Below, piece after piece: positions 1 to 54,866 of a stretch of 64,000 bases of DNA. A program made the translations under genes and the position numbers. The DNA is from Podarcis melisellensis (taxonomy: Eukaryota): the NCBI GenBank assembly GCA_964234715.1, contig OZ174276.1. One strand, written 5' to 3'. The notes under the pieces were generated by a model. That model was not told the DNA's origin and searched no databases. It saw only the letters and a list, made by a program, of their open reading frames with translations. Every line of letters begins with the position of its first letter. Position 1 is the first letter of the stretch.

Positions 1-625
1 GCCAAGCTTCCATCAATTAAAACTTCGTTGTGACTTTTAGGGGAGGAAAAAAAATCTTTCCACATACAAGGAACTTTTTGGACATTCTTATTTTACATGG
101 CAAAATTTGTTTAGAATAATAAAACAGGAACTTTCCCTGATGTTGCAATTTATACTGTATGGCTTCTTTTTCATGTTTCATCTAGGTTTTTAGAAGTGAA
201 GTATAGTAAATATGGTTCGTTAAATTGTGAAGGCGCTGGAAATACATGAACGTACCATCTTAAAGGCAAGTTCTGTAACCTTACGTTGCTGTTCATAAAA
301 TCATGCCTTCACAGCACTTCAGGTGCTGTTGGACTTCATGTCCCCAACAATAGTTTGGTGAGGGCTTTTATTGTTACCATCTACTTGTACACTTAAGTCT
401 GAACGTGTAACGATATTTAATGTATTTAGAGTTTCCTGTTGCAGGGTTTATAAAATTGACCTACTAAGTTCACGTGACTTCCTGTACTGTTAAACTTTAT
501 TGTAATAAAATGAAAGAAAAAAATTGTCTTTTTATTCATGACCAGCTGTGGACAACTGCCTGAAGGTTTGTACTGATGCATGCTATGGTAGTTTATGGTA
601 TAATAAATACAGATTTCCTGATGCT
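1..625 (+). other. Terminal part of a 3'UTR of an upstream gene (tentatively HNRNPA3-like), with tandem polyA signals
   Basis: AT-rich, repeat-free, no ORF. AATAAA at 504-509 and 602-607, with TGTA elements upstream. Resemblance to the end of the mammalian HNRNPA3 3'UTR is recalled, not verified. Confidence 0.5.
305..365 (+). other. Predicted four-way-junction RNA element, copy 1
   Basis: P1 gccttca/tgagggc; P2 cagcac-ttcag-gtgctg; tt linker; P3 ggac-ttcat-gtcc; P4 ccaac-aata-g(t)ttgg. Confidence 0.55.
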
Positions 626-1902
626 ACATTGATATATTCTGAATTATTTGAACTTCAAAGTCACTACTTTAGCTGTATGCTGTAGCTGACTCCTGAACAA
701 GTAAATAGACCTGTACACTTATTAAGCAGTTGCAACAAAGTCTTAGGCTTAAGAAGACATGTTTCCCCCCCCCGAATGGTGCGCTTTCTTAAGACTTCTT
801 CATGTTTCCTATGTGTAAATGTGCTTCTACTAAGAAAATGCTATTGTAGAGCACATTTTTTGGCCTTGCTTCAGTTCTTCCTCAGTTTAGAGACCTCAAG
901 CTACTTAACCTAACATTTTTTAAAAAATATATTTTTTATTAAAGATTTCTCTTTATAAAGCTTAGGTGCAAGCATTGGCTTCTATAATAAAGGTGACCAG
1001 CCAAGAGGGATTCACCATAAAACATAGGTTGCAAAATAACAGATTAATCTTAATCAGTTGATCAATTAATCTCTATCTGGGCATAGCAAAAAGCAGTCTG
1101 GTTAAAAACTACAGCTGAAGCTGCCCTGTGTGATTCAAACGTTGTCCTCATTTTGCCTCATGACTGTGTGTCAAGAAAACAGCTGTGGCGAGGTTTCAGC
1201 TGTGTCTTTCACTGGACTCTGTCCCATTTATAAAACCTAGCAGGAAAGAGGGTAAAATTATCGCCTTGGATGACTGAGCAGTTGTTGCTCTCAAGGGGCA
1301 TGATGTGTTTGGGAGGTTTTGGCTCAGCATTTTGAGCCTTGTTTCTTTATATGCAGTACAAACCAGATCTCTTTTTTATTGCTTTCTCTTGTTAGCAAGA
1401 TAAGTATTTCCATGAGAGCTGGGAATAGCAAAACTCCTGTTCCTACTTCCATCAGTTGATTTATAAAGACAAATTCTGTTACTGTCATTTTTTGCACTCC
1501 ACCCCTAGCTAATAGTAATATTGCATGTTAACAGCACCAATTTGTAAAGTAAAAACTATTTCCGATTTGCGTACGGTCTATTTCAGTCCTTTGCTTGGTC
1601 TCAAAAAACTTTATTGTTCATGTTTGAAGTTCCTTTGCTGCTTTCTGTACATCCTCTTTTTATATTTTTGTAACTTTCAAAGATGCCCTGCCTTCCATTA
1701 GAAACTTTGGCTTTGTGATCTTCACTCATTGTTTTAAGTTGTTTTAGATTTTCATTTTGAGAAATTTATTTTGCTGGAGTACTGTGTATTAAATGTCTGA
1801 GCAGTGTTATTGGCACTTTGAATATGCTTTCTGTTGACTGGCTACCCATTTCCCCAAAAGGTACTTCAGAAATATGCAGCCATGTTCACTGTTTTATAAT
1901 TA

Positions 1903-2162
1903 CCGTATTTTTCGCTCTATAAGACGCACCAGACCACAAGACGCACCTAGTTTTTGGAGGAGGAAAACAAGAAAAAAAATATTCTGAATCTCAGAAGCCA
2001 GAACAGCAAGAGGGATCGCTGCGCAGTGAAAGGAGCAATCCCTCTTGCTGTTCTGGCTTCTGGGATACCTGCGCAGGCTGCATTCGCTCCATAAGACGCA
2101 CACACATTTCCCCTTACTTTTTAGGAGGGAAAAAGTGAGTCCTAGAGAGCAAAAAAATACGG
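1903..2162. mobile_element. Tc1/mariner-superfamily (pogo/Tigger-like) non-autonomous MITE
   Basis: TIRs ccgtatttttcgctctataagac ... gtcctagagagcaaaaaaatacgg, flanked by TA on both sides. Confidence 0.8.
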
Positions 2163-3920
2163 TACTTCACCCCTTTAGCTGTTCATCTATTTCCTTTTGC
2201 ACTATTATGATGGCAATTGTGCAATTATACATACCTGTTGACCATTATCTGAAGAAGTTGTGCTTGTTTTTCTCATTCATGAAAACACTTATCTGAAGTT
2301 TTCTTTGACATTACTGTCTCTATAGATCCCAGTACTAAAGAGGCAAACCATTTTGGCAATGGGCTTGCTTAAGCATGTGTTGGTAACTTTTCTTTAGTCT
2401 ATGGCAAAATGAAACACAATGATTCTCGCAACATGGTTCATGCCTAATGAGCCCATTAGCAAGCCTTTTGTAGCCCATACTGGCCACTTTACATTTAAAA
2501 GAACTAGTGTACAGTTTGTACTAGTTGCATCCAGACTCTCCTTCTGCTCACAGAAGAAACAGAGATTAAGCAGAGGCTCCTGCTGGGCAGAGGGGTAGGC
2601 AAATTTCCTCTTCAGCACCTGCACCACTTTCCACATGATGGAACGCTGGATCCAGTAGACAGAATTTGATCAGAAATTTACTAATTTCTACTGTAGCCTT
2701 GTATTGCCCCTTTATATTACCTGGAGTGGCACAGGTTCCCCATCCCTGCTGTAGAGATTCACCTGTACTGTACGCTTGGGTTAGAGATAACTAATTCCCC
2801 CCCCCTCACTGGAGGCAGGCATTCTGAAGCCCATAGGCCCCTCCATCTTCTAGATAGAAGCTGTTGAAATCTATTTGCTCTCAGTGGAAGAGTGCCAATC
2901 AGTTTCCGTCCTGCTTCCACTGAGAGACAGGGTGCTCATGGAGGTGCAAGGGAACAGCTGCTTATTATTTTCAGCATATATTCAAGGCCTTTATGTTGCA
3001 CTTTCTGAAAATTCTGAATACAAGCTTGTTTTTAGAATAAAAACTTCCATAGGTGTTGCTAATCCATAGGCTGGGGTCATTCATACATGTAAGCAAACCA
3101 TGGTCAGTTATGAGAATGAATCTCAAGTCTCTTGTGATTTCCTCCATTCCTTCTCTTTTGTGCCCACAACGAAGGAACAAAAAACTTAGTTCCTTGTGAT
3201 ATCTGAACATTGGGAACTGTTACTTGTTTGCAGTATTTGTAATAAGTGATGATCCAACCATGGTTTTGAGTTAATTGAAAGTAGAAGCTTTTTATCTCCT
3301 TGAGAGTTGCAGAAGCAGTAGGGTGCACAAAAGCCCATGGCTCACTCTCCAAATTGGAGACCGTAGTTTCTTGCTACATCTGAACTTGGCCATTATGGAA
3401 AGGAATTTTGATACTTTAACAAATTCGTACCTCTGACATTAAAAAAATGATTTATGTAATACAGTTGTCTTAATAATTGTACTGGTCTAACTACTATGCA
3501 AGAGTGATGTAAAATTTCTGAACAGCAGATTTGTTTTTTTACATTTTTCACTTTTACTGCATTAGTTCAGAATATTTTATCACTTGGAGGGGAAACACCC
3601 ACTTTCTACTGAGTGTCATATAGCACTGGTCAAGCTGGAAGGTGAGCACTCTAGTTGGGGTTTTATTTTTCCTATACATTAATTCTGGTTTACAGATTCC
3701 ATATCTGATTTGTGTGGGGCTTAAAAGTTGAGACCAAATCTTTGCTTGATCATTGGAATTTTGTTAATTTTGATTGCATGTATTTTTAACTTAATTGGGT
3801 TGTGTTTTTCTAAAATTTAAATTTTTCTTCTTCCTATAGCCCTGCCATAGGACAGGCTGAGGCAGAGTCTCAGTGTTGCCCTGTTCAGTCTGAGGCAAGT
3901 GGGATTTATTTTATTCATTC

Positions 3921-3995
3921 TAGGGGCTTTCACAGCTTTATAGCTGTTGGATATTCATGTCCCCAAACTTGCAGCAAGTTTGGTGAAGGCTCCTA
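3921..3995 (+). other. Predicted four-way-junction RNA element, copy 2
   Basis: P1 taggggctttca/tgaaggctccta (12 bp, 2 GU); P2 cagct-ttat-agctg; tt linker; P3 ggata-ttca-tgtcc; P4 ccaaacttg-cag-caagtttgg. Confidence 0.55.
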
Positions 3996-6897
3996 TCTTT
4001 AATTTAATTTAGGATTTTTATAATCTTTTGATGGGCTCTATATTAATATTGATACTCTGACTTTAGTGCTTAAATTTATTGTTGTTAGCAGTCAGAAATC
4101 TTAAAATGAGTCAAAACATATCCTGTTCAATTGTTAATCCCTCCATCACCTTACCCTCTGAAACTTGATGTAGTGATGCCATATTTTAACAGCAAGATGA
4201 CTGCCTTTGAAATGGTGCTGTGAATTTTAAAAGTCCAGGAGTTTTGTTGGCTGTGTTTAGTCTTGTTAAGAAAATGCCTGTGTTGAAATCAGTTTTTCTC
4301 CACTGATACACACCTCTGCAGTTGGGGGTCAGTGACATCAACCTAACAGAAATGTACCTGAAACAATTACCTTATCATTAAATATGTTATCTGTCATAAG
4401 TTAATATTAATGTAGAGCCCACAGAGTGGAGAAAAATGCAGTTGTGAGTTTCATAAGATGAACAAGTGAGATAAATGTTTAGTAGGAAACATTCTTTCAA
4501 CAGCCTGATTTTAAAGGTAAACAACTTGCCATATTTATGTGCACTGGAACATAATGAGCATAGACATTTAGGTATTCCTAGTGTAAGCAATTTTCCATAT
4601 ATTATGCACAGAACATAAAACAAACTTTCAGGGGTTTTGGTGCCATTTGAATCCTTCCTTAGAAAATTTATTGCTAGACTCATGTGAAAACACATGCATT
4701 ACTTTAAAAGAAAGATTTAAAATTATGAGGAAAGCTGCTGATAAAAGATTTCCAAGAATACTTGAGAATCTACTTCTATCCGCAGCTCCTGCAACAAATC
4801 TAGTTTTCGTTTGAGAGAGTTTGAAGCTTTCACAAGGCACCTAGATTTTCTGGGTGGTCCCTTCAGTTTGCACTTGCAGAGCCTCAAACTGCTTCTTAAA
4901 CACTTAGTTTTTTAAGAGTTTGGGAATTTGGTGTGAGAGGCTGTTTTCCCTTAATTCAAGGGATGGCCCTCCATAAGTTGTTTGGCTCCAAATCTCATCA
5001 GCACCCAGCCACTATTGTCAGTGATCAAGGCTTGCATGAGTTTCTATCATTTGGAGGGCTAAAAGTTCTCCATCCCTGCCTTACACAGTCCTCTCACCCA
5101 ATCCTCAAAGTGCTTTTCCAAATTCAAGTGTCAATTTCTTTTCTGTGGCATCTACTAGCTCTGGCTGTAACTCATGTTTTCGTGGTTGCAGTTTTAAAAC
5201 GCTAACTTAGAATTACCTCTGTCGTAATACCTAAGCAATACAATCAGCTGCCTGTCACTTCTCTCACATGCATGCAGAACCCTCTGCAAGCTTCTCATTT
5301 TCTCGAGAAATTGTAATCCAGAGTCAAGTTCACTGTGACTACCTCACATCTGAACATAAACTGCATTCAAATCCTCAATTCAGTGTATTGTCATTGTGTG
5401 TGACGTGACTCTTGACAATTAATGGTGAAGATGGACTCCGCACTGAAGATGGAAAATAGCAATCAGCGTTTCTTCTACAATGTCCTCTGCTCTTGAGATC
5501 TGCTTTTTTCAATGTTTTCCCACCCCCTTGGTCAATAGCCAATTTATTGAAACATGCTTTGTTTGGAGGGCTTGAAATAGAAGGGTTGTATTCATGGCTT
5601 CTGTTATCTTTTTGAGTATCCACGAGCAAATAGCTTGGGTGTTAGAATGCCTTTACTGTCACCCTGTAATAAAATAGATTAAATAAATGAGTGCCTTGAT
5701 CCAGTTGCATGATTTTAGACAGGAATCACTTGATAAGAGAGAACATGTTTAGCTTTGAATATCCCCTTCATCCAATCTGAACCTTTTTTTTTTTTTACAC
5801 TTCTCCAGCTGTCCTACAATCACATTTTCTAGCATATACCTAATGTAACTTTATGGTTTATGAAGAACTGAGAGATACTAGGATTTTGTCCAAATGTATA
5901 TGCCTATTTCTTTATAATTACAGAGCAACCTAAAAGTCGGTATGAATGTACTGCAAAGGAGATCCAAACAGGTTTCATTGCTTTCCTTGGCTACAACTTT
6001 CTAAATTTTGGCTTTAGTTTAGAAATTCCTCTACCTGGAGTACACCTACCGGTATTTTCAGGACTTCACTAGTAGTCTCAGGTGGTTCTTGGGGCATTGT
6101 GCTTCATTCATTCTGATCTCTTGAAGTGAGACGCACGACCAAGTTGAACTTTAAAAAAATAAATTTAGAATTAAGATTTAAATTGCAATTCTGAATTGCA
6201 CTTCGCCCAGATTTTAAATATTTTCTGCCATCACAGAACTTCAAAATGCTACCCAGACTCTCGCATTGAAAAAGATGTTTTGGGATTTTGTACATTACCA
6301 ATTCAAAGGAAAACTGCCGTCATTGCTTACATAGTATTCGGTCCCCACCCCCAGTGGGGTGAGCTCTTGTGCAAAATTGTCAAATTGATTTTTCAGTAAA
6401 GAAGTCAATAAGCAATTTGAGAGTTCTCTGAGGCCCCAGCAGAGTGGAAATACTTTAGATAAGTTTGTGTACATCCATATGTCATGCAGAGTCATGTCTT
6501 AATTTGAAGTACTCCGACTTGACTAAAGTGTATTCAAGTAGATACAAGTAGTTAAATCCAAACTAAAGATCATTTTGTCTCATAGGCATACACTTGAGTT
6601 AATTATACTTACAGTTCTGGCAACTGTAAGGTGGCATTAATTCTGGCCACTCTTGCTATTATTAGTTTTGTTTCAGTTTTAACTGAGGCAACACTACTTG
6701 CTTTAAAATTATATGCATCTGAATCTTTTGATGGATGTTTATTGTTAAATGAAACCACACAATCACTTCACATCTTTTGTATAATAAAACATTTAATATA
6801 TAATTCAGTCCATATTGCTTGTTGACCACTGTGACTCGTAAATTTATAAAATATTTGATCACAGAATAATGTCAATTTAAGGAATCTTGTTGGGTAA

Positions 6898-7020: not shown

Positions 7021-10000
7021 TTTACACATGGTTACATTGTCAGTGCCAGCAATTAAATGTGAAGTAACTTGCTAGAACAGAGAGAAATAGTATTGCACTA
7101 CATTGCAAGTGCTTTTTTTTTTTTAGGTTTCAAGCTGCTTTTAGGTTTTTGAGAGATCATACATTTTGGGCATTTCCTATTCTGAACTTTAGTAGTCTCT
7201 TTTGGTCAACTTAACCATTTGTTGTCCTGGGAAGCATACTTAAGAGAGCCATGCTGAAATGGGGAACGGGGGACGGGACGGGACAACGACACTCGACATA
7301 GAATCTCACTTCCATTCTTTTTGGCCTACTGAGTCTGCGCTGCCAACCTAATAGATTCGAATGTCTCACTGCATTATTTCCATACCTTGTTCAGATAACG
7401 TATTTGCAGTGGAGCATTCTTGCCAGTGTCTGGCAAGACTAAATAAGTTGTTCCCTTAATCATATTCCCTTAATTAAAAATAAATGTGAAGACACAAAAA
7501 TGTCTTCGCTAAAATAGCAGTTTTGAATCACTGGTGTGTGCCTGGCAAGCACTGTTTTCAAAATGTCACACCTCTACTTCACACAACAGTTGCTAAAAGT
7601 TAGGAGTCAAAGTTCAGTATAAATTTTACCCTTGTGCTTAATTTTAAGAATAGTCAACTCGGCTAACATAAAATATTTTATAATCCTTTAGGAATTCAGT
7701 CAGCTTTCTCGGACTGTTAGTAGTAATACAAGTACAGGGCTTTCCAGTTCATTTTCACAGATACCCTTGAAAGAACACTACATATTTTTGGGGGGCAACT
7801 TGCACTGTAACCCTTTAACATTTGAATTGGTTCAACAAGTATATTTCAGAGTTCAGTTTGACGGACTACTTAGGAGTTAACAGTTGCTATAAAAAAGTGC
7901 AAGATTTTGGTTTGTGTTTCGAAATTTAAAACTAAATTATGAGTTAAGCTTTTTGGTTTAATATAATTTGTGTTTTTGTTGACTAGCAGCAGAATTTCAG
8001 CATTTGCTACTTACTGGTAGAGAAGAAAAAAATCCCACAGCACTGCCAGTACAGGTTAGTTTAATCTGTAAGTACCTGATGTTTGTTTGAAATCCTGTAC
8101 TACAAATGCCATCTTAGTATGTGAGGATGGAGCCATAAGTTATCTGGAGAGGGTTGCATCTTACTACACCTAAAAGGGATAAATATTCACAGGCTCCGAT
8201 TAAGAAAGGGAAGGGGAATTACAATAATTTGGGTTTAGTGTATCATGTGGTGGCATTCCAGTCAGGGATCCAGTAATGCACTTTTTTTCTAAGTGGGAAA
8301 TCATTTGACTAAGGTTGATTGGAAAATAACCTCAATCACATCTGGGGCGAATGGGTGTTTATGCTATTAACTAAACAAGAGTAATTAAATATTCTGATTC
8401 TTTCTTCTTAGCAGTCCTTACAAACACCCATCAGCACAACTTTGTTAACTGATGAGCACATCTTTTGTGATGGGCATTATTGAGACGAAATGCTGTGTCC
8501 TCTGAAACCCTTGAATCTCAACACTTTAAAGCCTGGATAATTTTCTTAGGCAGTCCCTTCTCACTTAAGTGGGTTCTGAATATTCAGTGTTCTTTGGTTA
8601 TTTCTTAAAGTCGACTATGCATTTCTGTAGTGCTGCTGTTTTGCTTAAACTGGTGGTTTGTGCAAAAAATGTAGTTGCATCTTAATTAGAACTGCATGTT
8701 TCTGTATCTTTAATTTTCTGCTGCCATGTTTACTAGCCAACTTAATTTGGTAACATGCTTTTAAAAACCTGCTCTCAAAGTGGCAAGCTAAAGCTGTTGG
8801 CAGTCATTCGAGCATTTTAAGTAAATAAAGTTGAGAAGTGGTCACAGCCCTGACACAGAAATATCAGCTTCTCTCACCAACTCTAGGTAAATCTATTGCT
8901 TTATTGGTTGCTTCATCAATATGAGACTGCTGCTGCCTCTGTGCCATTGCAGTCTCTCTCTTAATGCCACCTTATATTCATGTTCAGCAATCCTGAAACT
9001 TCTCTTTAGAATTGCCAAAATCTCCTTGGAGCAGCTTTAGAATGCTTCTTAAGACCTCCTTGTTTTGAGCTGGGCTTGTTGGCTTAGAGTTAAGCTAGCA
9101 CAGGGTTACTGGTCTCCTACATTTTAGTTTGATTGAAAAAAATCCAGTTAATTGGTTCATTCTGTGGTATTGGGTGTGTTACGGCATAAAAAGCCTTTGG
9201 ATTGGGGAGTAGGCTACAACTAAAAATAATATTTTGTGATCAGCATGAGAAAACAAAGCTATGTATCATGCCTACCAACTTGTGGATAATGAAAATGCTT
9301 CTTAAAACTACAACAGATGTGGAAATTTAAATCTAGCTGCATTTCATAGTAAAGGTTGAAGAACCCAGAAGAACAAGTAGTCGCTGTAACCATTCAATAT
9401 ATGAATCAAGAGTGTTGTTTAGAATGTCTTGGTCCCTTGTTTTTCTAGTATTTCTCAGTCCCATTTCTCTAGTGGTCAATATATAGTATTTTATAAGGAT
9501 GACAATCTTAAATCTGCCAGCTCTGTACAGTTCAGGTTATTTTGGGGCAGTGGGCAAGTGGGCAGAAGAAACAAAACTGAAACCCAACCGCTACTGTTGG
9601 CATTCAGTAGTTCAGCCACAAGAATTGAGTTGACCTAGGCATCATGTTAAAAATTTTGAGTTGCCAAAAATTAATTCACCTGCAAGAGAAACTATGAACA
9701 TTAAGAACCTGCCATTCATTTAGGAGACTCTTTTTTTAGAACACATCCTGTCTTACTTGCTGTGCTTGTATTGAAAATAAGGGTATCTTGTAAACATAAT
9801 TAAAATTTTGGTATCTATGTCTTAACTTTCCTTCTGTGCCCTTTACTTTCCTTTATAATAGGGAAAGTTAATACTTAAAACTAGTTTGTTGATTAGTAAG
9901 ATAACCTGGTAATGCAGTTGTCACTGAAATCCCAAACTACATAGACACCTAATCATATGATTATCCCCAAGTGATTTGTACAGGGCTCAGCTATGCCAGG

Positions 10001-10973
10001 GAAACACCTAATTCTTAAGGTGTGTGGTAGGATATGCTGCTTCACACAAGCACAACACTACACAAGGAGTGGCAAATGCAGTTTAGAACCCTAGCACAAG
10101 GAGTCTCACCAGGATCATATTTATTTCTCCTCTGACTTGTGGATGTAGCTTCTATTTCAAGCAATGCCTTAATGCTGACTAGATCATTGCTACTTGGTAT
10201 AAACTGGTTAACCAAATCTAAATGGCTTTGATCATGCACAGCAAGCTTGAATTTTCTGGAGGGACACACTAAACACTTGGGCCTGTTGATATATTGGATT
10301 GCATTTATATTTGTAAACAGCTCTACATAGTATGAAGCAGCTGGCTTTTGTCCTGCTTATTGCTGTGCAGCTGGAGTGACCTAAGTGGAGTATGTTTTCA
10401 GTTCCAAATACTGTAACAGATCCTGTGATCTTACTCTGATCATATGAAAACAACTTGTATAGTCCTGCAGACACCAGGAGAACCAGAAAGTGAGGGAACG
10501 TATTTCTGATCTGGCAACTTGGTAAGTATCTAGCCTCTTCAATGTTTTTTGTTGGTGATAAAAAATAATCTGTATTTCATTCATGTAGCATTTCCCTGAT
10601 GAATGGCATAAAGATGGGGACAGACAACTCGTTTATATGCTTTTGATTAAAATTATACAAATAGCATTATCGGATGTACACTTAAGTAAAGCTGTGTATC
10701 TTTCATTTATTAAACTTTGAACCAGAGTTAATTACTGTGCCTGTCTGTTCTTTGGTCCTGAAATATTTGCACAAAATTGCCCCACATGGAATTGTATTTC
10801 ATTGCGCGGGGGGGGGGGGGTCTTCGTTTGAAAAGTTATGTAGTTGTAGAATTGCACTTACATTTTATTTATTGAAAAATTACACCCTCCTTTCAATCAG
10901 ATGATTCCCAAGTTGGCCTTACAATCAAAAGGCAATGGTGCTAAATCCCGAACACGCACACATGTGTGTATGC

Positions 10974-17677: not shown

Positions 17678-17826
17678 TAGAATCATAGCATTGAAGAGTT
17701 GGAAGGGTACCACAAGGGCCATCTAGTCCAACCCCCTGCAATGCAGGAATCTTTTGCCCAATGTGGGGCTTGAACCCACGTCCCTGAGATTAAGAGCCTC
17801 ATGCTCTACCAACGGAGCTATCCCAG
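17678..17826 (-). mobile_element. tRNA-Lys(CUU)-derived SINE with CR1 3' tail (P.s.1/polIII-SINE type)
   Basis: Minus strand: ggatagctccgttggtagagcatgaggctcttaatctcagggacgtgggttcaagccccacattgggca, then attcctgcattgcagggggttggactagatg...ccttccaactc...tatgattct. Confidence 0.8.
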
Positions 17827-27085: not shown

Positions 27086-30000
27086 TAATATATCTCTGCT
27101 CTTAGAGCTGTGTTGGTGAAGGACTTTGCTTGTACCACACCAGCTGTCATGGTGGTCTAGGTCTAGTGGGTGCTGACATATCTACATATAGTGAACAGCA
27201 GCTTCTGGTGGTGGAACAAAGCAGACAGGGTTCCTTTGCAATGCCTTCTGTATTCTGGAAGGTGAGGTCGGGGTCTTAATGCACTTTTAATGATGCAGGA
27301 TGAATCACCCACCCACATGAAATTTGTGGAAACGGCCTTCCTGTTGCTCAACAGCAGTGCCCAGCTCATCTCACTGCTCCTTACAGACACCAGCTATTGC
27401 TCAGTCTCTGATGAAATTCCTGCGTTGCATGGAGCCAGGGCTTGCTGCCTTCCATATAATTCCCACTTCTCATCAGCCCCAGCCATTATGACCAATGGTC
27501 AGGTCTATTGAATTTATAAACTGCTTCTCACAACAGAATGCCCCAATGCAGTTTAGAAGAATAATTTGCTTGGGGTAAAATGAAGTGACAAAAGGAGCTG
27601 TAGTCCATCAACATCTGGAGGGAACCACATTAACTATCCCTGCCATCAATTTAGTATGGGAGCCAGGAGAGAGGATAAACCTAAAAACAGAGGATGGAAC
27701 ACTTCCAGTGGAATTGGAAGAGGCTTGGCTTGGGTGTCAGGAATCATGGACAGAATTTTTAGTGATGCCCTTTGATGGGTTCAGCATACAAGGGAAATAT
27801 TTTTCTCCTCTTTCTCTTGATTGTTTCTCCCTTGTCACTGGAACAGCCTTTCTCAACCTTGGGTCCCCAGATGTTGTTGGACTTCAACTCCCATCATCCC
27901 TAGCTAGCAGGACCAGTGGTTAGGAATGATGGGAGTTGTAGTTCAACAACATCTGGGGAACCAAGGTTGAGAGAGGCTTCAGAATGGCAGGTGTGGCAAG
28001 GGTAGGAGCATCCGCTGAATGGATGAGTGGGGTGAAAAGAGTGAGAAGAGATTGGAGGAGATGATTTGCAGCAGGAGTGGGAAACTGGTTCCTTCAGGTG
28101 TTACTGGGCTTTGGGAAGAATTCAGCATCTCACTTAGATTATTGTTCCATCAAGGTAAGTATTTTGGCTTGCTTGATGGAAAACACACAGATACACACAC
28201 AGCCCTCTCCTCTCCTCCCTCTCTGAACTGTTCCAGGGGCTTTCCCAAACGGCCCACCCTGAGCCAATTTTGGGAGCTGCATAAGGGGAGGAGGAGATGC
28301 CAAATTGCAAAAGTGGAATCCCTTCCACAGGGCTTACATCAATGAGATTCGTTGGTTGAATCCTGCCTTCTGACTCCCATTCTGCTTGACATTGGCCATG
28401 GCAAATGAGGCTGACGAGAGTTGGATCACACCTGGAGGACCACTGGCTTCCCACCCCTGGCTTAGAATAATGATAAGCAGTTATTTTTGGCAGGTGTCCA
28501 CTTTTAAGAATTATTTGGTTGGGGTGGCAAGGCAAGAACAATTTCAGTTCTGTAGCTATGATGCAAACAGAAGCCTAAGATTTCTGGCATCTTGACCTGA
28601 TCTCTAGTGGTGTCTGTCTGTCTGTCTCTGTGTGTCACATGATACCATATCACATGAATATAGCTAAACTGAAGGATGCATTCACCCAGCTATATTTGCC
28701 TACTTAACTTGCCTACGTCGATTGACAAAGAAAATGTCCCACGAAATAGTCAAGTCTTATTGCATAGGATCCTCACCTCTTTCTCTTTTGCTTCTGGGCA
28801 GCAACTGGGCATGGGGGTGGGCACAGCTGCCACCCACTGAAGGGACTGAATTGACTCAAAGGGCTCCTGTTGTTGCTCCCTCTAAACCTGGGATCTTTTG
28901 GGATTATTCAGTAAACAAGAGTGTTTTACATCTGTCTTGTTACACAGGGGTCAAAACTTTCCTTGCCAGGTGCATCCTGTTGCTGCTATCAGGCTAATCA
29001 CATTAATATCTGTAGTCAAAACAGCGAACCTGATGGGGTGTTGTTATGCTGGGAAGAGGAGAAACAACTTTTTAAAAGTCACATGGCTTTAGTGTTGGGA
29101 AAAGATTGACTAGCTATGCTCACATTTTCACCTTTCTTTGTGTCACGCTGACCAGGTTCACACATGCTAAGGTGAACCATGACTTGGCATGAACATGCAA
29201 GTCTGTGGGCTCTGGGAGATTATGCTGCAGGTACGTTGCTCCTCTGTCTTTTTGCTGTTGTGTCACAATGAGCTTAAGCCATGGTTTGGCTTAGCATCTT
29301 GTCTGGGCTTGTGGTTTAGCTCACCTCAGAAACCATGAGCTGTAACCTATTGTTACAACTCGTGGTTAGTCTGGAGAGCACTTAAGTCATGAACCTGAGT
29401 TCAGACAACACATTAATTCGAACCACAGCTTAGCTTAGTGTGGTACAGCAGCAAAAATTTGACTTGGGCAGAAGTGAAGCAGCTACAGTCTCCTCTGTAG
29501 GTGCCCATGCATCTGAGTTCAGCTGTGGTTTGGCTAAGTGTGACGTGCAAACCAAGCCAGTGTTTGTTTTGCCAGTCATAAAGATGGGCGAGTTAGCAAC
29601 ATGTTTGATTTCCCTGTTAAAGTGATCAGAATGGTAAATACAGCCTCTGAGAAGGGGTGGTGGTTACATGTAACTCTGCTGAAGATAAAGGATCTAGAAT
29701 CCAAGCTCCATCCTGGACCCTAGAATCTGAGATGATTTGTTCCTAGTATACACACCAAAACTTGAATTTCAAAACCCCCACTAATTCTAAGTTCTAAATG
29801 CGTGTTTCCATTAGTCTCAGGCAGTATATCTTGTGGCTCATCTTTTCCACCAAGTTTTTCAGACTTGGAATCCCATGCTTCGAGAACTATAAAGTATACA
29901 CACAAACTCCAAACTCGTATTATATTTTAGGTCTTTCAAAATGTTATGTGATTAGTATTTGTTAGGATCCCACTATTCAGCTAGAGCTGAAAGAACTGAG

Positions 30001-32685: not shown

Positions 32686-35600
32686 TGCACACCCTGTCTT
32701 CTCTCTTATATCATAACAATAATACAATAATCTCCAATTCCTTCTGTTGCTCATAGTTCACGTCCTGCTCACAAATTCAACATGCTAGAATATTTCTTTA
32801 CATTATCCAAAAAAGGCTTCTGTTCTTCCATAAAACAATTCCCCATAGTCCATCACTTTACTTATCCATTCTTATTTGGTGGGAAATTCTCCCATCTTTC
32901 CATTTTTATGCATAAAGAATCCTAGCTGCTCTCATTACATACATAAACAACTTAATCGTCTTTTATTGGACTTCTCTCCCTATAATCCCTACCCTGTCTT
33001 TTTTTAAACAAACAAACAGCAGCTTTGATTTTCTCTGGACTGTTAATTATGGTGACCCTGTTATCATAACTGTACTCTTCTAGTATATCTTTCAAGTAAA
33101 AGAGCAAGCAAGCAGGGCATGTTTAAAAAGCACGTGACCAGGCCCTAACTGCATCCAGTTGCAACATACCAATGTGCTCCTTCCCTTCTCATTCCTCCAT
33201 ATTCACAGACCCTGAGAGTAAATGTTACTTAATGAGTGATCTTTTTTGAAAGAAAGAAAGAAATGGCTTGATCATGAAAGCCACAAGGACAGGATATTGC
33301 AGAATAGGTGTACACAGCATCTGGGGTGGAGAAGCCTTTTATAATCAGCCTGTTTGGCTTAGGGGAAGGCAGACTGTGAGCCTAGTTGTGGAAATGGAGG
33401 TGTTTTTAAGAACACAAATGTGTCACTTTTACCTGTGAATGTTGGGAAGGTATGCCTTCAACAGTATTAAAACTCTAGGACAGGCTTCCTCAACCTCGGC
33501 CCTCCAGATGTTTTGAGACTACAGTTCCCACCATCCCTGACCACTGGTCCTGCTAGCTAGGGATCATGGGAGTTGTAGGCCAAAAACATCTGGAGGGCCG
33601 AGGTTGAGGAAGCCTGCTCTAGGAGCTGAATTCATCCCCATTCCAGATCCCTATTCAGTATTAAGGGCCTACACGCTTAGAACCACTGTGAGGCAGGGAT
33701 AGGAAACTTGTAATGCCCTCTAGACGTTACACTCCACCTGTGATCACTGGCCATGCTGGCTGGGACTGATGGGTATTGGAGTTCAACAACATCAGGAAGG
33801 CTGCAGGTTCACACTTCTGAGGTCTCAGCCTCACTTACCTCACAGAGTGCTTGTTGGTGGGGGAGGAAGGGAAAGGAGAATGTTAGCCGCTTTGAGACTC
33901 CTTCGGGTAGTTATAAAGCGGAATATCAAATCCAAACTCCTCCTCCTCCTCTTCTTCTTCTTCTGTCATAGTACCAGGAGCCTGGACCTGCAACCCCCAC
34001 CCCACCCCCATGCCTTTGAGCCCCATTTATGTGCTGGGGGAGACCCGCTCTTACTTGGCTCCCTGCTGAGTTTAGAACTTCAGGCACACAGGCTTCTAAA
34101 CTGTGTGGGGAGCAGAGAATGGCAAGCTCCCTGCTGCAGACCTTCACCCTCTGAATACGTGGCACACGGTGGGACAAAACAATGAGGATGCAATATGAGT
34201 CCTTTAACACCTGATAGCACTTTCCACCCCTTCTAATTCAGATGCCTTAATGCTGGCAGAAACACATGGTGGAACCTGCATTTAAACATGGATGCAGCAG
34301 GGTTCGAAATTAGCAGGGCGCCAGGCAAATTTCGCGCCTAAAGGTTCTCCATTTGCGAACGCCTAAGAGAAGTGGCTACCATTTTTTGCACCTGGCTGAC
34401 ACTCAAGGATTACTGAAATGTATGTGCTTTGAAGCCTCAAAGTGTATGTTAAGGATAGGCAATATGTTAAGGAGTTTAACCACAAACAGTAGAGTGTTTT
34501 GAATACTGAAGTATGGTATTATTTTTTTTGCAGACACCAAATTAAACAGTATTAACAGTTTTAACAATGCATGTTAAAAATGTCATATTAACAATGTGTC
34601 ACTTATATGAATTGCGTAATGGTTCAGGATTATCAAAATAAAGTGTTGCCGACCCCCCTCCCCAAAATCGCGACTAGGCATTCTGTTTTGGCGCCTACAA
34701 CCCAGATCCCAGGAGCCATTTGGCTATAGCTTTTCTATCCCGGTTTCTAACACTGCATGGATGGTGTATTTGAGCCCAGCTTCAGTTGTTAACAGTTACC
34801 CCCTTGTTGCTTATTACAAAGCTTTGCTGAAGTATTGTCTTGACATCTTCCTTTTTATTTGAAACCACGATGCCCACCTTAAGGTCAAATCAGTGGTGTT
34901 TTCACACTGCAGAGCAGTTGGCAGTGCAAGTTTTACTTCAAAATGAAAAGCAAATGTTAACTCTGTTCTAGTTTCTTGTAGTAAACAATACCTGTAAAGT
35001 TTTTTTGTACTTTGATTTCATTATATGTGTTGGAAGCCACCCAGAGTTGCTGGGGCAACCCAGCCAGAAGGGCAGGTTATAAATAACATATAAATAAAAA
35101 AAACCAGAATAAATAATAAAGTTATTATTAGTTATTATTCCTTCCCCCCCCCCCTTTTTGGGAGGTAATTGTGAATCTTGATGCAATATTCTGCCTGACT
35201 CCAGTGGTGCAGTTCTTCTGTTGGTTATGCGTGGACAATTCCGCCACTAACGTTTGGTTTCTCTTCCACACAGCTCTGCGGCATTGCTCTGATCGCCTTG
35301 GGCATTTATGTACAGATTGAACTCAAACACACCCTGGTGATGACCAGCGCCTCTGCTTCAGGCCCTCCCATTGTCATCCTGGCTGTTGGAGTTATAGTCT
35401 TCTTCATCTCCTTCTTTGGCTGCTGCGGAGCGTTAAAAGAGAACTACTGCATGGTCACCACGGTGAGGAGAATGAAGGGGAGCTAGGCATTGGAATCGCA
35501 GGGTGGGAAGCTGAACTCTTAGATCTGACTGGCTGGAGGGAGCTAATATAGCTTAATAGTCGGGACTGCAGCCTCTAAAGTTCCATCTAATCCAGGCACC

Positions 35601-38600
35601 TGAGCCTTTGGCACCCCACCCTTTCTAGAGCTTGAGAAATGGAAGGCAGTAAGGATAGCGAATAAACCAGGCATAGGCAACCTTTGGCCCTCTAGATATT
35701 TTGGACTACAATTCCCATCATCCCTGAGGACTGGTCTTGTTAGCTAGGGATCATGGGAGTTGTAGGCCAAAACATCTGGAGGTTGCCTATGCCTGGAATA
35801 AATGGTGCTTGCCAAAGTTACGCTTCATCTTACTGCTGATCTAAGACCTGTGTTGTTAACCTTGCCCTGCTACAGGTCTCAAAATCATCTTGCCCAGGGC
35901 TAGTCAATATGTTGTTCTCCAGATGTTGTGCCATGGCTGCCATAATCATGATAACGGTTTCATAATTTTTGACCTGGCAATATATCACGAAACATGGGGT
36001 GTGTGCACACTATGCAAAAATCACAAAGCAGGAAAAACAGTGAAGCCAGCCAATGCCTCTACAGACTTCATCCTTATTTAAGACATTGTGATACTTCAGT
36101 ATATTGCAATGTTTAGCTGGTGATTTATCACGATGTTGACAGCCAGCTGTCGCTCAGACCTAGCCTCAGTAAGCATGGCCAATGGGTGATCAGGAACATT
36201 GGGAGTTGGGGAGCACCACGTTGGCATCTACTGTTCTAGCCTGTTGTCATCGTTTCCCATTTTGAATATTGGGAGTCAGGATGGGGCAAATCACTGGCTT
36301 CACAGAACAGATTTGATAGGCTTTGAATAAGAATGGGTTCTGTCTCCTCTGGCTGGCTAGGCCACTGCAGACAGCAGGGTGGGAGAGTTATTTAGGCAAA
36401 GCTCTCCTCTTCAGAGGTAGGGCTGCTTCTTAAGTGGACACAGTCTTTGCTGTCAGAAGGTGAGATTCATATGAATAAGGGTGAAGGCGGGCTATTGACT
36501 ATTACTGCTAAGCCCAAAATGAAGGGTGGCAATGAGGCTGGGATCAACAAGCACTCCATAGATATTATTAATAATTGCATTTCCTTCAATAGTTTGCTGT
36601 GCTGCTGACATTGATCTTCCTAGTGGAGATTGCAGCTGCCATCGCTGGCTACATCTACAAAGATGAGGTAAGAGATGCCTCTGGGTCCCGTGGTTCTGCT
36701 GTTCTCTCCAGATGTTTGCTGCAACCCGCTGGAGCAGTGGTAGCCAACATGGGGGTCTCCAGAGGGTTTTTTCTTCCATATTTTTTATTGATTTCAGAGG
36801 TTTTACAAATTTACTTAAATTTCAACATGTTTTACTTAAAATTTTGACTTTTTAAATTTTTTATTTTACAATTTAGGATATTCATTTAGACAACCTTAAA
36901 ATATCAGTGACTTCCCTTCTCTTTCCATGGTTCATTTTGCTTAGCATAAACCCCTGCCTGTTTTATATAAACTAAACCATTCAGTATTTCATTATTACTT
37001 CCATCAAAACTTATTTAAACCATTGAATTTATCTTAACGTTGCCAGCGTTTTCAAGTGTGCACAATTTCCCCCATATATTCAATAAACATTTTCCAGTCT
37101 TCTTTAAATGTATTTTCTTCTTGTTCTCTTATTCAGTATGTTAGATCCGCAAGCTGCGCATCTACCATCAGTTTAAGTTGCCATTCTTCTTTGGTTGGGA
37201 CCTCGCTCGTTTTTCATTTTTAGGCTAACAAAACACAGGCCGCTGTAGTGGCATACATAAATACCCTTTTTTTAAAATAAAATTTTTGACTTCCCAACCT
37301 TACCTCCATGATGTTTTTATTCCCACCCTTTATCTACTGCTTTATATAACATATTTGTATTTGATACAAATATCCTCTATTTCACTTGTCATCGTTTTCT
37401 TTCCGCTGCTCGTAATTCAAACCCTGCCCACTTTTTAAAAAACTAGAATAGCTTGTTAAAAGAAAGTTTATTTACTCACATGCAGACACTTGTTATCAAG
37501 ATTCAGTCATCATAGTTCAAGCGTCAGACAATGAAACAAATCACTTCTTCCAAACATGGCACAAGAAGTTGACCCCATCAAAGCAGACCACAAAATTTCA
37601 GCGTTTGTTTTGATGATGTTCTTCCATACATGTTGAGCTGCTTCAGGTATCAGTCTTATTGAATGAAATAATAGAAGCATTATTCTTGTACGTGTGTGTT
37701 TTCTTAATTTCTGTTAAATGTCAGATTTGATCCAAAGGCTTCCTCTTGCTTTCATTTGCTCCTGGCGGGCTTACGCCAGGTCTAGCTTCTTCTGCGTGGC
37801 TGCCAGCTGCTCCAGCAGCCACTTCTTCTGCCAGTCGAGGTAGCACCTCCGCACCCTGTTTGCCTGCCAGCCCACCAGCAGCCCTTAAGCGAAGGTCAGC
37901 AGCACCGCCACCTTCACAGAGCGCTCTGAGCGCAGCGCCATGTCCCCCCCCCTGCCCACGTTTTAATTTGACTGTAGCAGTTCTTCAGAGGGTCTCCACT
38001 CTTCCATAAACAGTTTGTCACTTTGATCTGCTATTTCACAATTTCCACATAGTCCATTAAACTTTTGAAGTCATTCCTCTTTGGTTACTACCTCTCCTCC
38101 TTTCCATTTCTGCTTGTACAGGATTCTGGCTGCTGCTGCTGTTGAACCATCCTTTTGGGAACCTCCATCCCTATTATCCCTTGGTAGAAAAGCTTCGGGG
38201 CTTTTGGGAATAACCAACTTGAATTTTTTCCCCTTCAATTCATTATGTATCATTTCCCAAAAGCCTTTAGCGTTTTATACATGTCCACCAAATATGTAAA
38301 AAATGACCCTTCAGCATGTTTGCATTCCCAACATTTATTTGACACGTTCTTACACATCTTAGCCAGTTTGTTTGGTCACCAGGTGATTTTTAGCTAGAAC
38401 ATCTCTCGCTTCTGCCATTTGCCCTCCTGGATGAGGTTAATGAGAGTTGGGAGTCCCAGCAACAAATAGAAGTTGTATGTTGGCTGCACCTGCCCTAGAG
38501 AGAGATAGGTAGGGGTAATATCTAAAGCGAAACACTTTCTTTTTAATCACTGGATTGACCCTGAGATTGAAGACCATCACTAGAGAATTCATCCAGAAGT

Positions 38601-45011: not shown

Positions 45012-48000
45012 CTGTTGAGAGGCAAGTATAATTGCAGTCATCAAAAACAAAGAGGGACCATTTTACGAACTGCCTGCCTACCTTTGCCTGCCCAGTGCAT
45101 CCATCCTAATTACTACCTACACTCTTCCTCCTCCTCACACCTGGTTCCTGGTTTCCCTGGTCTTGGACCTAGTACTTCAGATCGAAATCAGAACTTTTAT
45201 GCACATGCTTGGCATTTTTTTTTATTTGCATCTATGTTGGAAGGCACATCTGCACAATCCCTTTTTTTGGAGTGTATGTAACCCTATGGCTCCAGAGTAC
45301 TTTGATGGCTTTCGGAACACTGTTAAACTCAGAGGAACTAGTAACAGGCTCTGCGTGCATTACAAAACACGTATCTCGGATTGCACCACGTGTTGGTTTT
45401 GCCCAGGGGACATGACCTCTTCTTATCTGAACTTAAAATTGTGAACAGAGGCACAGTGTGGTGTAACGGTTAAAAGTGTTGGGCTGTGACCTGGGAGACC
45501 AGAGTTCGAAACCACACACTGCCAGGAAGCTCACTGGGTGACCAGTCTCTGTCTCTTGGCCTAACCTACTTCACGGGGTTGTTGTGAGGATAACATGGAG
45601 GTGGAAGAACCTTCAGCTCCTTAGTTGTGGGTGGGTGGGGGGAGGTGTTATATGAACGTAGTGAGGAAATAAAAAATGCAGTCACCTCTCTTCTGTAGCA
45701 GTTGACTCTCCCCTAATCCCATGCCTCTAAATAAGTGTACACCAAGGATTTGATCCTTTTATAAGCCCCATTATGAAACTGGCAGATGTCTCCATGCCTG
45801 AGCCGAGCTGCCCAGCTCCAGTCTTAGAAGGTGAAAGATTAGCTTGAGCTTACAGAGTATGTCTCTTCCTTCCCACCCACCTCATATGAGAAGTTGTGCA
45901 TGCCAAGACATCACCACCAAAGGAAGGCTGGAGGGAGGGAGCTCTGCAAGCACCAGCAGTCCTAGCAAGTTGTAGTGTGGGTTAAGGGATCCAGTGCTAG
46001 CTCGTGTTGGGAGCCTCTACCAATGAACTAAAGCACATACTTGAACCATGGAGAAACCATTGCAGGATTGTGCTGCTTAGGAGCTGACAGATGAAAGATA
46101 AGAGTGATGGTTAAAAAGAAGAAGCTGAAACAGGGTTGGAATTTGCTGCAAGTAATGGGGTGTATAGGGACGTGGGTGGCGCTGTGGGTTAAACCACAGA
46201 GCCTAGGACTTGCCAATCAGAAGGTCGGCGGTTTGAATCCCTGTGACGGGGTGAGCTCCCATTGCTCGGTCCCAGCTCCTGCCAACCTAGCAGTTGGAAA
46301 GCACGAAGTGCAAGTAGATAAATAGGTACCACTCCGGCGGGAAGGTAAACGGCGTTTCCATGTGCTGCTCTGGTTTGCCAGGAGCGGCTTAGTCATGCTG
46401 GCCACATGACCCAGAAGCTGTACGCTGTCTCCCTTGGCCAATAAAGCGAGAGGAGTGCCGCAACCCCATAGTCGGCCACGACTGGACCTAATGGTCAGGG
46501 GTCCCTTTACCTTTACCTTTAATGGGGTGCAGGGGAGAAATAGTATGGATAGGAAAATTGGCCTTCCATGTGTTGTTGGACTCCATCCTCCATTAGTCCT
46601 GGCTGGCATGGCTGATAGTCTGGGTCTATGGGAGGTGTAGTTCAGCAGCATCAGGAGGGCCACAGGTTAGAATCATAGAATCTTAGAATTGGAAGGGACC
46701 CAAGGGTCATCTAGTACAACACTCTGCAATGCAAGAATCTCAGCTAAAGCATCCATGACAGATCGCCATCCAGCCTCTGCTTAAATCCTCCAAGCATTCT
46801 CCCTCTTCTATGTTACAGCTCTTAAGGCATTTGAAGATGGCCATTATATCTCTCCTCTGTCTCCTCTTTTCCAGGCTAAGCATACCCAGCTCCTTCAAGC
46901 GTTCCTCATAAGGCTTAGTTTCCAGACCCTTGATCATTTTGGGTCTGGAAACTTAGGTTAGTCATTCTTGTGCTAGGGCTTGAATTAAGTTCTTGCTGCT
47001 CTGTGCCTGTTCTGTTCTTTTGTACAGCTAACAGCCCTGTATTTCAGAAACAAGATCTAACCTTGCTTTCCCTCCAGCAGTCAGTGGCTGCACTGGTACT
47101 CACAGTTTGGAAAGAAGTCTTCACCGTAGCTCTGCCGAGTCTCGGGGCTCAGTCGGTCCCAGAGTTGCCTTAAGGAGGCTTCTATTGATTCAAGGTTGGT
47201 CACAGCCGTCTTGAAGAAGCCCGGCTCCACAATAGAGACCTTTACCCCAAAATGGTACATATCCCTCCTAAAAAAGAGGGGGAAAAAGAGGAGTTTCATA
47301 TTCCATACTCACCATTGCAAGGATTAGGAACACACTCCATGAGCTTGCCATGAAGGGGTTGAATAATAGCGAGACTGGAGACGCCAGTATGTTGCAATTT
47401 CAGCTGAATTTGGGGAAACTGCTTGAAGCATCCTTTGTGCAGAGCTATTTCCATTGCTTTTTGTTTGATTTGCTCATTGCAAACAGCTGAAATTCTGACA
47501 ATAAACCTGATTTGCAATGGGGATGGGTTGAATAAATTTGATTGCAACTGTAAAGGTAAACACAGCCTATATCAAGTGATCGTGAACATGTGTGTGTGTA
47601 TATACATATGTCTTCCACCTTTTTTTACTGGCTGGGCTTCTACCTTTACTTTTTGCATAAAATAAGCTTACAGCTCTTTATTTCCATTATGGGGGAAATG
47701 CAACTGCTGAACCTATTATTGTGCAGTGGCTAAAAGTACAGGATTGCTGCCAGCAAAAAAAAACTTGGCAACTCCAATGTGCAGCCAGCACAAAGAGGGA
47801 AGCTCAACACCCAAGCAGCTTCCTGTTGTGGGAAATTTGCCCCTTTGTGATGCCACACTTGACTTTTGTCATCAAAACAATTCCTTTTTCCTATCTTACT
47901 TTACATCGCAGCTTAAAAGAATTTGGAACCCTAGCATGATTGCACTGCTAGAACCTGGATGAAAACATGGGAAAAGGCCGTTATCAGTGAACCTGCTCCT

Positions 48001-52508: not shown

Positions 52509-53076
52509 AGTAGAGTCTCGACAAAGACCTGCGGGGTAAGGGGAAATGGGCAAGGTGGGCTGAGCACAAGTCTCTCAGCTCTAAGTACTGAATTTTGCTT
52601 TTGTTTTCAGTGTCCTAATCACATAGGCCAGGCTCTAGTGGGAAACCTAGTGTGTTCCTGGACTACATTACCCTACACCAGGGTTTCCAGTTGTGTGGTT
52701 TTTTTGGACTACAGTTCCCATCATCCCTGACCACTGGGTGATGGGAGTTGTAGTCCAACAGCTGGAGGCCCATGTTTGGGAAACCCTGTCCTAGATCATT
52801 GGCTGTACTGGAGGGCAGGAGATTCCCAATCCCTGAGAATCGGTAGGCTTCTGAATCTAGAACGAAGCTGTCTGTTGATATTGTTCTACTCTGCTGTTAT
52901 CTAATCAGTCATGTTAATCACTCTTGGGAGATTCTCAACCCTGGCCTTTGGCAGCTAAGGTATTTTGTTTTGTGAGGTCCACCTCTTTGGCTGAATTTAT
53001 GTCACTTTGTAATGGTTTAACTTGCTTTTTAAAAAATGTCACTGTTTATCTGTTTTTATACTGGTATATAATGTTA

Positions 53077-53430: not shown

Positions 53431-54730
53431 ATCTATAATGTTGTTACATACCGTAACCCATCCTTGGATCTTATGGTGAAGGGCCAGTAAGAAATAGGTA
53501 AAATAGATTGTCCTTTATATATTTTGAGGTAATAGGAAGAGATGATGAGGGGCTATTCAGAAACAAACAAATGCTTTAATTAACCCTCAACATATTTTAA
53601 CCAAACTAAAAGTAATGCTACATTTTTCACCATAATGTAGCTGGTATTTTAAAAAAACAAACAAAACAAACAAAACAAAACAAAACCAAATAACTGGGAC
53701 TGAGGCATCTGTGCTGGCTTGGGAACATGATGTGGAAGAAGGGGAGATCTAATAACACTTCCTCCTAAACGGAGGTGAGGGAATGTGACCTAACCAGGTC
53801 TAGGAATACAACTCTGTGATCTTCACCCCTCCATGCATTAACTAGCTTTAAGCTTGTTATTTATATTTGACAGCAGTTTCCCACGTGGTTTAGCTCTGAA
53901 CTGGTCTGGAGGGTGGAGAGAAGACCATTCTGTGTGGCAAGCAGAAATGCTTATGCTGATGGATTGATTGTATTCGTGCAACATTCAGTTGCACCCATTG
54001 TGCATGTAGTCTTAGGTTTCCTGTGGATATGATAAGTTATAGCATCTGGATGAACTCTGCTAAACACAGATGGAGAAGCTAGAAGTCTCAGGGAGCCAAG
54101 GATTGGGAATCTTCCAGATCAAAGCCTGCAACTTGCAGTGTCCTCAGTGGAGTCAGCCTTGTCCTTGTCTATATATGACCACTTGACTCTCTGAGGTAGA
54201 TGCAAGCAAACTCTCTCCAGAGCTATTGCATCTAGCGGGAGAATTTGGCAGTGCAGGCCAAGAGCAATAAAACAGTGCCAGGTTATCAGCCCTGGTTGCT
54301 CCCACAGCTCTAAGCAGGGGCTCATACACACATTTTACGCCACACATTCCTCCACATCCTTCCTGCTCTAGCGATTGCCATGGCGACCTGCCCTAAACTA
54401 GGCCACAGGCCTGGGTGTGACTGAGATTAGATGGGATAACAACAGCAGCAGCAGATTTCCAGCTTCGTGTCTTAGTTCTTTGGACAAACGTAGGCATAAC
54501 GTAGGGTTGTACTCTTTTATGCAGATATATTTGAGGCACAGAGCAAAAACCTCTAAGTTTTAAAATAGGCCAATTAATACAGACTCGTTGCAATAGAATA
54601 TTAATATACTTTAAGCCAGGGGTCTATACAGTTGTTGCTAGACTACAAGTCCAGTCATCCCTGGCTGGAGCTGATGGAAGTCCAATAATATCCCTGCTTA
54701 GGTAATATTAACATGACATAGCGATTAGAG

Positions 54731-54866
54731 CAGGCATAGGCAAACACGGCCCTCCAGATGTTTTGGGACTACAACTCCCATCATCCCTAGCTAACAGGAC
54801 CAGTGGTCAGGGATGATGGGAATTGTAATCTCAAAACATCTGGAGGGCAGAGTTTGCCTATGCCTG
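54731..54866. mobile_element. hAT-family MITE
   Basis: TIR caggcataggcaaac/gtttgcctatgcctg; perfect 8-bp TSD gattagag. Confidence 0.9.

Follow-up and report, generated by a model that had tools for sequence, protein, structure and literature searches.

What are the two clover-shaped RNA folds at the start of a 64,000-nt stretch of the Podarcis melisellensis genome (GCA_964234715.1, contig OZ174276.1; hereafter, the window), and what might they do? The folds occupy positions 305-365 (clover 1, or copy 1) and 3921-3995 (clover 2, or copy 2) of the plus strand, and the original prediction, which was made from the letters alone, could assign them to no known family. Our analysis identified them, with very high confidence, as the pair of clover-shaped folds that the EvoFold study placed in the human gene ZNF207 (Pedersen et al. 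2006, PLoS Comput Biol 2:e33, PMC1440920); the match was made on the locus and on the shape as described in that paper's section 'New Clover-Shaped Folds' and its Fig. 6. According to this section, the ZNF207 pair comprises the highest and the fourth-highest ranked of the long clover-shaped folds in the human genome; the shorter fold lies in that gene's 3' untranslated region (UTR), the longer one in a splice variant's intron, with less than 3.5 kb between them, and their central stems are almost identical. In 2006 the pair stood among the top-ranked 'completely novel families' of EvoFold.

The lizard locus agrees with that description in location (a fold in the 3'UTR and another a few kb downstream in an intron), in shape (a shorter clover of 61 nt and a longer one of 75 nt with near-identical central stems), and in its mode of variation (compatible or compensatory changes and variable loops). 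We found no essential difference from what the section describes, and the lizard pair is the squamate orthologue. The novelty that had been claimed for the motif was therefore removed, since the pair has been known since 2006 and its finding in a squamate is a rediscovery. In the literature that we searched, no later paper assigned the clovers to an Rfam family or attributed a function or a binding protein to them, and Rfam 15 returned no family at either clover, both at gathering thresholds and at E<=10 in 171-nt searches. To the EvoFold description, the present analysis adds that clovers also occur in an archosaur-like species, Xenopus, bichir, bonefish, catshark, and, as a single copy, lamprey; that AG|GCAAGU stands invariant upstream of each clover; and that a conserved 55-nt exon precedes copy 2.

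ZNF207 (BuGZ) has gained importance since then as a kinetochore/BUB3 chaperone and as a pluripotency factor. The lizard coding exons lie to the left of the window, and the ZNF207 context was read from orthologous loci. A scan with a 22-base core of the motif retrieved two host-derived metagenome contigs (L001 and L002) that carried copy 1 nearly letter for letter between conserved flanks. In L001, the C-terminal ZNF207 exons, which end in ...PPMGMRPPVMSQGGRY*, stand directly upstream of copy 1, and the stop codon precedes copy 1 by approximately 360 nt. Because the orthologous contig has these exons upstream of copy 1, the start of the window lies inside the ZNF207 3'UTR. The proteins of other species were recovered by searching singly with the L001 exons (L001:7114-7431), and the corresponding loci were fetched through these proteins; the spacing between the stop codon and copy 1 was alike in the Xenopus, bichir, and bonefish loci obtained in this manner. 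The ZNF207 exons of L001 and L002 were 92-100% identical to proteins of palaeognath birds and 82-89% identical to those of mammals, and neither contig contained an Alu core. On these grounds, a human source for L001 and L002 was rejected, and we take the host, as judged from sequence, to be archosaur-like (bird, crocodilian, or turtle). An open reading frame (ORF) of L001 at 9950-10165 also looks like a bird-type repeat. Scans of genome-contig and viral-contig collections with the core pattern gave no match, and a translated-ORF search on copy 1 yielded no candidates.

The two stretches and their shared skeleton were confirmed by sequence and alignment, and the four-way-junction fold proposed for both was reproduced by minimum free energy (MFE) folding of each copy, by RNAalifold on 13 sequences, and by pair counts, which agreed with one another. 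Both copies consist of a closing stem (P1) and three hairpins (P2 to P4) around the junction (Table 1). As RNA of the plus strand, clover 1 folded with an MFE of -24.7 kcal/mol (z -2.7) and clover 2 with an MFE of -35.8 kcal/mol (z -6.1); the reverse strands of both folded more poorly. The junction core was nearly invariant (UUCA-CAGC...GCUG-UU-GGA...UCC-CCAA...UUGG-UGA), its unpaired residues being one or two U only, and all four helices were regular stacks of Watson-Crick and G-U pairs. The individual differences between the copies had been read correctly for P2 (cagcac/gtgctg in copy 1, cagct/agctg in copy 2), for the last pair of P3 (C-G versus U-G), and for P4 (4 bp versus 9 bp). For P1 (gccttca/tgagggc versus gctttca/tgaaggc), the preserved pairing and the 12-bp extension in copy 2 stood, whereas the changes proved to be one-sided (C-G to U-G and U-G to U-A), with no double compensation. 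Copy 2 lies approximately 3.6 kb beyond copy 1. When one copy was compared with the 64 kb by gapped blastn, the other was matched at E 1e-5 to 2e-3; at the scale of an all-against-all comparison of the 64 kb, the E value is of the order of 0.01-1, which is marginal. Chance resemblance of the copies was nevertheless excluded, because orthologues of both were found at syntenic positions in other vertebrates.

Table 1. Features of the clover locus in the window, numbered from its first nucleotide
Feature	Position	Strand	Basis
Clover 1, fold in the ZNF207 3'UTR	305-365	+	Fold, covariance model, orthologues
Clover 1 helices	P1 305-311/359-365; P2 312-317/323-328; UU 329-330; P3 331-334/340-343; P4 344-347/355-358
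Clover 2, longer intronic fold	3921-3995	+	Fold, covariance model, orthologues
Clover 2 helices	P1 3921-3932/3984-3995 (12 bp); P2 3933-3937/3942-3946; UU 3947-3948; P3 3949-3953/3958-3962; P4 3963-3971/3975-3983
AG|GCAAGU, GC-type 5' splice-site-like or U1-binding-like motif, 39 nt upstream of clover 1	264-271	+	Exact match
AATAAA, proximal poly(A) signal in the ZNF207 3'UTR	504-509	+	Sequence; kept in L001
Polypyrimidine tract and acceptor AG (3838-3839) of the alternative exon	3806-3839	+	100% lizard/L001; kept from catshark to lizard
Exon-like block of 55 nt, alternative downstream ZNF207 exon	3840-3894	+	100% lizard/L001; both splice sites kept in 6 jawed vertebrates
AG|GCAAGU, the 55-nt exon's GC-type donor; distance to the 7-bp P1 of clover 2, 31 nt downstream	3893-3900	+	

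The loci compared were those of the lizard, L001, Xenopus laevis (L011), the bichir Erpetoichthys (L012), the bonefish Albula glossodonta (L006), the catshark Scyliorhinus (L010), and the lamprey Lampetra (L004/L005), and they provided a set of 13 clovers from 7 species. L001 aligned to positions 253-725 of the window at 80% identity and to positions 3741-4067 at 90% identity, at a matching distance, which indicates that both copies are orthologously conserved. Between the lizard and L001, clover 1 was 98.4% identical and its flanks approximately 83%, the segment 3806-3920 was 100% identical, and clover 2 was 94.7% identical; none of the four differences in clover 2 breaks the fold (A-U to G-U, U-A to U-G, G-U to G-C, and one in a loop). 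A lone island of 31 nt at 3466-3496 was 93.5% identical between the lizard and L001/L002 within an otherwise unconserved stretch between the clovers.

A covariance model (R1), the kind of model that the original prediction had called for, was built from seven sequences, and in the window it recovered the two copies and no others; this and later searches of the window covered positions 252-64000. The results revealed that R1 scored clover 1 at 73.8 bits and clover 2 at 76.9 bits and found both copies in every jawed vertebrate compared and one in the lamprey, with scores of 59-77 bits for the sense strand, against 13-19 bits for the antisense strand. The spacing between the copies ranged from 0.7 kb in the catshark to 7.6 kb in the bichir. 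The lamprey had one clover only within 10 kb downstream of ZNF207 (L004/L005 16517-26517), where a Peptidase_S10 gene starts 4 kb away; copy 2 either arose after the split from jawed vertebrates or was lost in the lamprey. In the lamprey clover, P3 was lengthened to 8 bp and P4 to 6 bp around an intact core.

Across the alignment, standard pairs filled 92.8% of the cells, compared with 37-50% when the partners were slid, and RNAalifold on the 13 sequences independently predicted the same four-way junction. Counted outward from the junction, the four innermost pairs of both P2 and P4, the three innermost of P3, and the greater part of P1 remained unchanged over approximately 500 million years and between the paralogues. 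Covariation was seen at distal pairs: at pair 5 of P2 (A-U, U-A, G-C, and U-G), at pair 6 of P2 (C-G, U-G, and A-U), and in the P1 extension (G-C, G-U, A-U, and U-A). Several pairs of the sense strand are G-U (P1 pair 4, P3 pair 4, and P2 pair 5) and become A-C mismatches on the antisense strand; the fold is strand-specific, because neither the antisense strand nor duplex DNA can use these pairs. The view that the element was selected for its structure was thus borne out by the long conservation, the pairing frequency, the distal covariation, and the specificity for the sense strand, and we hold with high confidence that the clovers are a selected RNA structure. Taken together, these features mark an RNA in which something reads both the geometry of the junction and the sequence of the core.

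We further examined two insect loci, those of the mayfly Cloeon dipterum (L007) and the dragonfly Ladona (L009). The best non-vertebrate match to the clover model was a weak one in Cloeon (L007:18242-18329, plus strand; 17.7-18.9 bits, E ~0.004-0.05), located 3.8 kb past the ZNF207 stop codon. It folds as a four-way junction (...UGGGC..GCCC-CCAGC..GCUGG-UGA...), and AAG|GUGUGU stands approximately 40 nt upstream; it could be the insect counterpart of the clovers or a chance match. The clover search of the Ladona locus returned noise only.

The original prediction had seen no similarity between the flanks of the copies, which was nearly right; it overlooked the common AGGCAAGT at 39 nt and 31 nt upstream. 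Donors of GC-AG introns have AG|GCAAGU as their consensus, and this motif is complementary to the 5' end of the U1 small nuclear RNA except at +2. The octamer AGGCAAGT occurs five times in the 64 kb, two of these at the clovers, and it was found 31-58 nt upstream of all 13 clovers of the 7 species. At copy 2, it coincides with the donor end of the exon-like block, and the extended P1 starts 27 nt past that block, in agreement with the placement of copy 2 just after a candidate exon. The likewise predicted position of copy 1 ahead of a polyadenylation signal proved accurate, with AATAAA beginning 139 nt after it (~140 nt had been given). Because the motif is present at both copies and serves as the exon donor at copy 2, the repeated unit looks like a weak GC donor, a spacer, and a clover. 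The exon region at 3830-3905 also forms a predicted hairpin of its own. In this hairpin, positions 3832-3837, at the end of the polypyrimidine tract before the acceptor AG, pair with positions 3899-3904 after the GC donor; in this model the hairpin could mask both splice sites.

We consider the best explanation to be that the two motifs are the paralogous EvoFold clovers of ZNF207, formed as four-way junctions by the sense transcript, and that they would be donor-proximal platforms through which the gene autoregulates splicing or polyadenylation at its 3' end; to this explanation as a whole we assign a probability of roughly 0.55. A function linked to the donor, by splicing or by polyadenylation, is the tentative part of it and is less likely than not. 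The identity with the EvoFold folds, the structure, its conservation and strand specificity, and the linkage of donor and clover are shown, and the binding partner and the regulatory outcome are the parts that we infer. The clover would offer a rigid platform to a factor acting in trans, for which the most plausible candidate is a protein associated with the U1 small nuclear ribonucleoprotein (snRNP) and possibly ZNF207 itself. The bound factor would set how efficiently U1 engages the adjacent weak GC donor, and this engagement would decide whether the transcript is polyadenylated proximally, which gives the productive mRNA, or is instead read through or spliced into the exon downstream. Downstream splicing would leave an exon junction in the 3'UTR, so the isoform would probably be unstable, and the outcome would be a feedback loop on the level of ZNF207. 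ZNF207 binds RNA and has been described as an auxiliary factor of the U1 snRNP that tunes poison exons of U1-related genes (bioRxiv 10.1101/2025.04.25.648738). The invariant weak GC donor before each clover thus offers a testable link, by way of autoregulation, from an orphan structure to the biochemistry of ZNF207. Among the functions originally suggested for the motif, a cis-regulatory or protein-binding platform remains the best reading, whereas the tRNA-like and ribozyme options received no support from ARAGORN, from Rfam, or from the regular helices.

The proposed logic has precedents. In the autoregulation of TDP-43 through a 3'UTR intron (PMC3950720), a similar choice is made between proximal polyadenylation and downstream splicing, and ultraconserved poison exons occur in genes of SR (serine/arginine-rich) proteins (Lareau 2007, as reported in a paper that cites it). 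With such 3'UTR-intron and poison-exon systems, ZNF207 has in common an ultraconserved non-coding exon with its splice sites at the 3' end of the gene of a splicing-related RNA-binding protein. It differs in the discrete four-way junction beside each weak GC donor; for ZNF207, feedback, sensitivity to nonsense-mediated decay, and a bound protein are putative.

Several points weigh against autoregulation at the donor. Since the core is so invariant, the evidence for covariation comes from few positions and from 13 sequences. The literature that we searched contained no paper on autoregulation of ZNF207 or on a factor bound to the clovers. Splicing at 265|266 and 3894|3895 in this lizard is predicted from sequence. 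The AG|GCAAGU before copy 1 might be a U1 site at which no splicing ever takes place, or its conservation could have another reason. Finally, copy 1 has been described as part of the mature 3'UTR, and it could act in the cytoplasm instead.

This last point leads to the main rival, in which the clover, as a cytoplasmic 3'UTR element, would be bound by an RNA-binding protein that controls how stable the mature ZNF207 mRNA is, where it is localised, or how it is translated; the GC motif would be unrelated or part of the binding site. It is consistent with the position of copy 1, which lies within the mature 3'UTR and upstream of the proximal poly(A) signal, and with the conservation of the entire 3'UTR around copy 1, which is approximately 83% between the lizard and the archosaur-like species. 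A segment of the Znf207 3'UTR is also listed among elements conserved across Bilateria, for which a function at the RNA level was suggested (Frith 2023, Mol Biol Evol 40:msad275, PMC10735318); the segment has in common with the clover the gene, the region, and the proposed RNA-level function, and it may correspond to the clover. However, copy 2 is intronic or lies downstream of the main poly(A) sites and is thus outside the main mature mRNA, and the donor-like motif stands at a short fixed distance in 13 of 13 clovers. This shared motif points to a nuclear step on the pre-mRNA, and we regard a cytoplasmic role as unlikely.

Returning to the donor-proximal platform, we also considered a broader form of it, in which AG|GCAAGU, a spacer of 30-60 nt, and the clover together make up the evolutionary and functional unit. 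This unit would have been duplicated before the radiation of jawed vertebrates and would be a sensor for ZNF207 or the U1 snRNP that controls splicing versus polyadenylation at the 3' end of ZNF207. A related insect element may exist (the mayfly match is the candidate), which would make the unit the bilaterian Znf207 3'UTR segment. We find this extension doubtful, with odds somewhat below those of a donor-linked function, though a little above those of the cytoplasmic alternative.

A tRNA-like signal, cut by RNase P and RNase Z as mascRNA is in MALAT1, would release a small RNA and leave a new 3' end. The cloverleaf outline with a 7-bp closing stem and the position of copy 1 near the 3' end of the transcript recall such a signal, and mascRNA/menRNA (RF01684) shares a cloverleaf-like fold near the 3' end of a long RNA polymerase II transcript. 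However, ARAGORN called no tRNA at the clovers, and the Rfam models for tRNA (RF00005) and mascRNA-menRNA gave no match there even at E<=10 in the 171-nt searches. The clovers lack an 8-9 linker and a variable loop, and the arm that would stack on the closing stem bears no T-loop (UUCRA). The length of P4 ranges between 4 and 9 bp, and UUCRA is missing from its loop. The features that define the class (a model match, a T-loop, a D-loop, and a 7-bp acceptor stacked on a 5-bp T stem) were not observed, nor was the tertiary signature of T-loop and D-loop by which mascRNA/menRNA differs from the clovers. We judge this explanation very improbable.

We give an equally slim chance to the view that the clovers are fragments of an interspersed repeat, such as a short interspersed nuclear element (SINE) or a miniature inverted-repeat transposable element (MITE), or a DNA-level element such as an enhancer or a cruciform, with an incidental RNA fold. 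Many ultraconserved elements stem from ancient repeats, and a palindromic MITE that is abundant in this genome has in common with clover 1 an exact 12-nt word and 21 of 25 positions. However, this match has an E value of ~0.02-0.3 and is not seen in copy 2, and from shark to lizard both copies stay in place with respect to ZNF207. In the window, R1 found only the two copies, and in the ZNF207 loci of eight other species (approximately 330 kb) it found only the orthologous ones. On the antisense strand, where the G-U pairs would be A-C mismatches, its scores fall from ~75 to ~18 bits. A fragment of a high-copy repeat, which the original prediction had named as the finding that would speak against it, was accordingly not encountered in the window or in the other ZNF207 loci. 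The idea that the clover core derives from the MITE was itself rejected as a chance match, in view of the E value (0.02-0.3) and of the 12-nt word missing in copy 2.

The least probable alternative, a self-cleaving four-way-junction ribozyme (hairpin-, hammerhead-, or twister-sister-like), has in its favour a four-way junction with a strongly conserved core, but no Rfam ribozyme family matched at E<=10 (chance-level miRNA and snoRNA matches only, E 0.95-10), the helices run uninterrupted and contain none of the conserved internal loops or bulges of which known active sites are built, and no match came from the hammerhead, HDV-like, hairpin, twister, twister-sister, pistol, or hatchet models of Rfam 15.

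Some further elements of the window were recorded during these searches. Pfam, applied to ten long ORFs of the window in a search for genes, gave no match. The palindromic MITE family has units of approximately 130 nt at 27841-27969, 33478-33606, 35660-35800, 46530-46670, 52660-52790, and 54728-54856, with the core TTGGACTACAACTCCCATCATCCC; the 12-nt word is common to the units at 27.8, 33.5, 35.7, 52.7, and 54.8 kb. We take the core TTGGACTACAACTCCCATCATCCC to resemble a ZNF143/Staf site. Between the clovers, at approximately 1905-2165, lies a lizard-specific insertion that carries long inverted repeats, both terminal and internal (taccgtatttttcgctctataagacgcac ... gagcaaaaaaatacggta), and an inner palindrome at approximately 1991-2070. 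It is missing from the L001 alignment and looks like a MITE. The sole Rfam match at gathering level in the window was to the tRNA model at 17763-17820 on the minus strand (39 bits); ARAGORN did not call it, and it is probably the head of a SINE.

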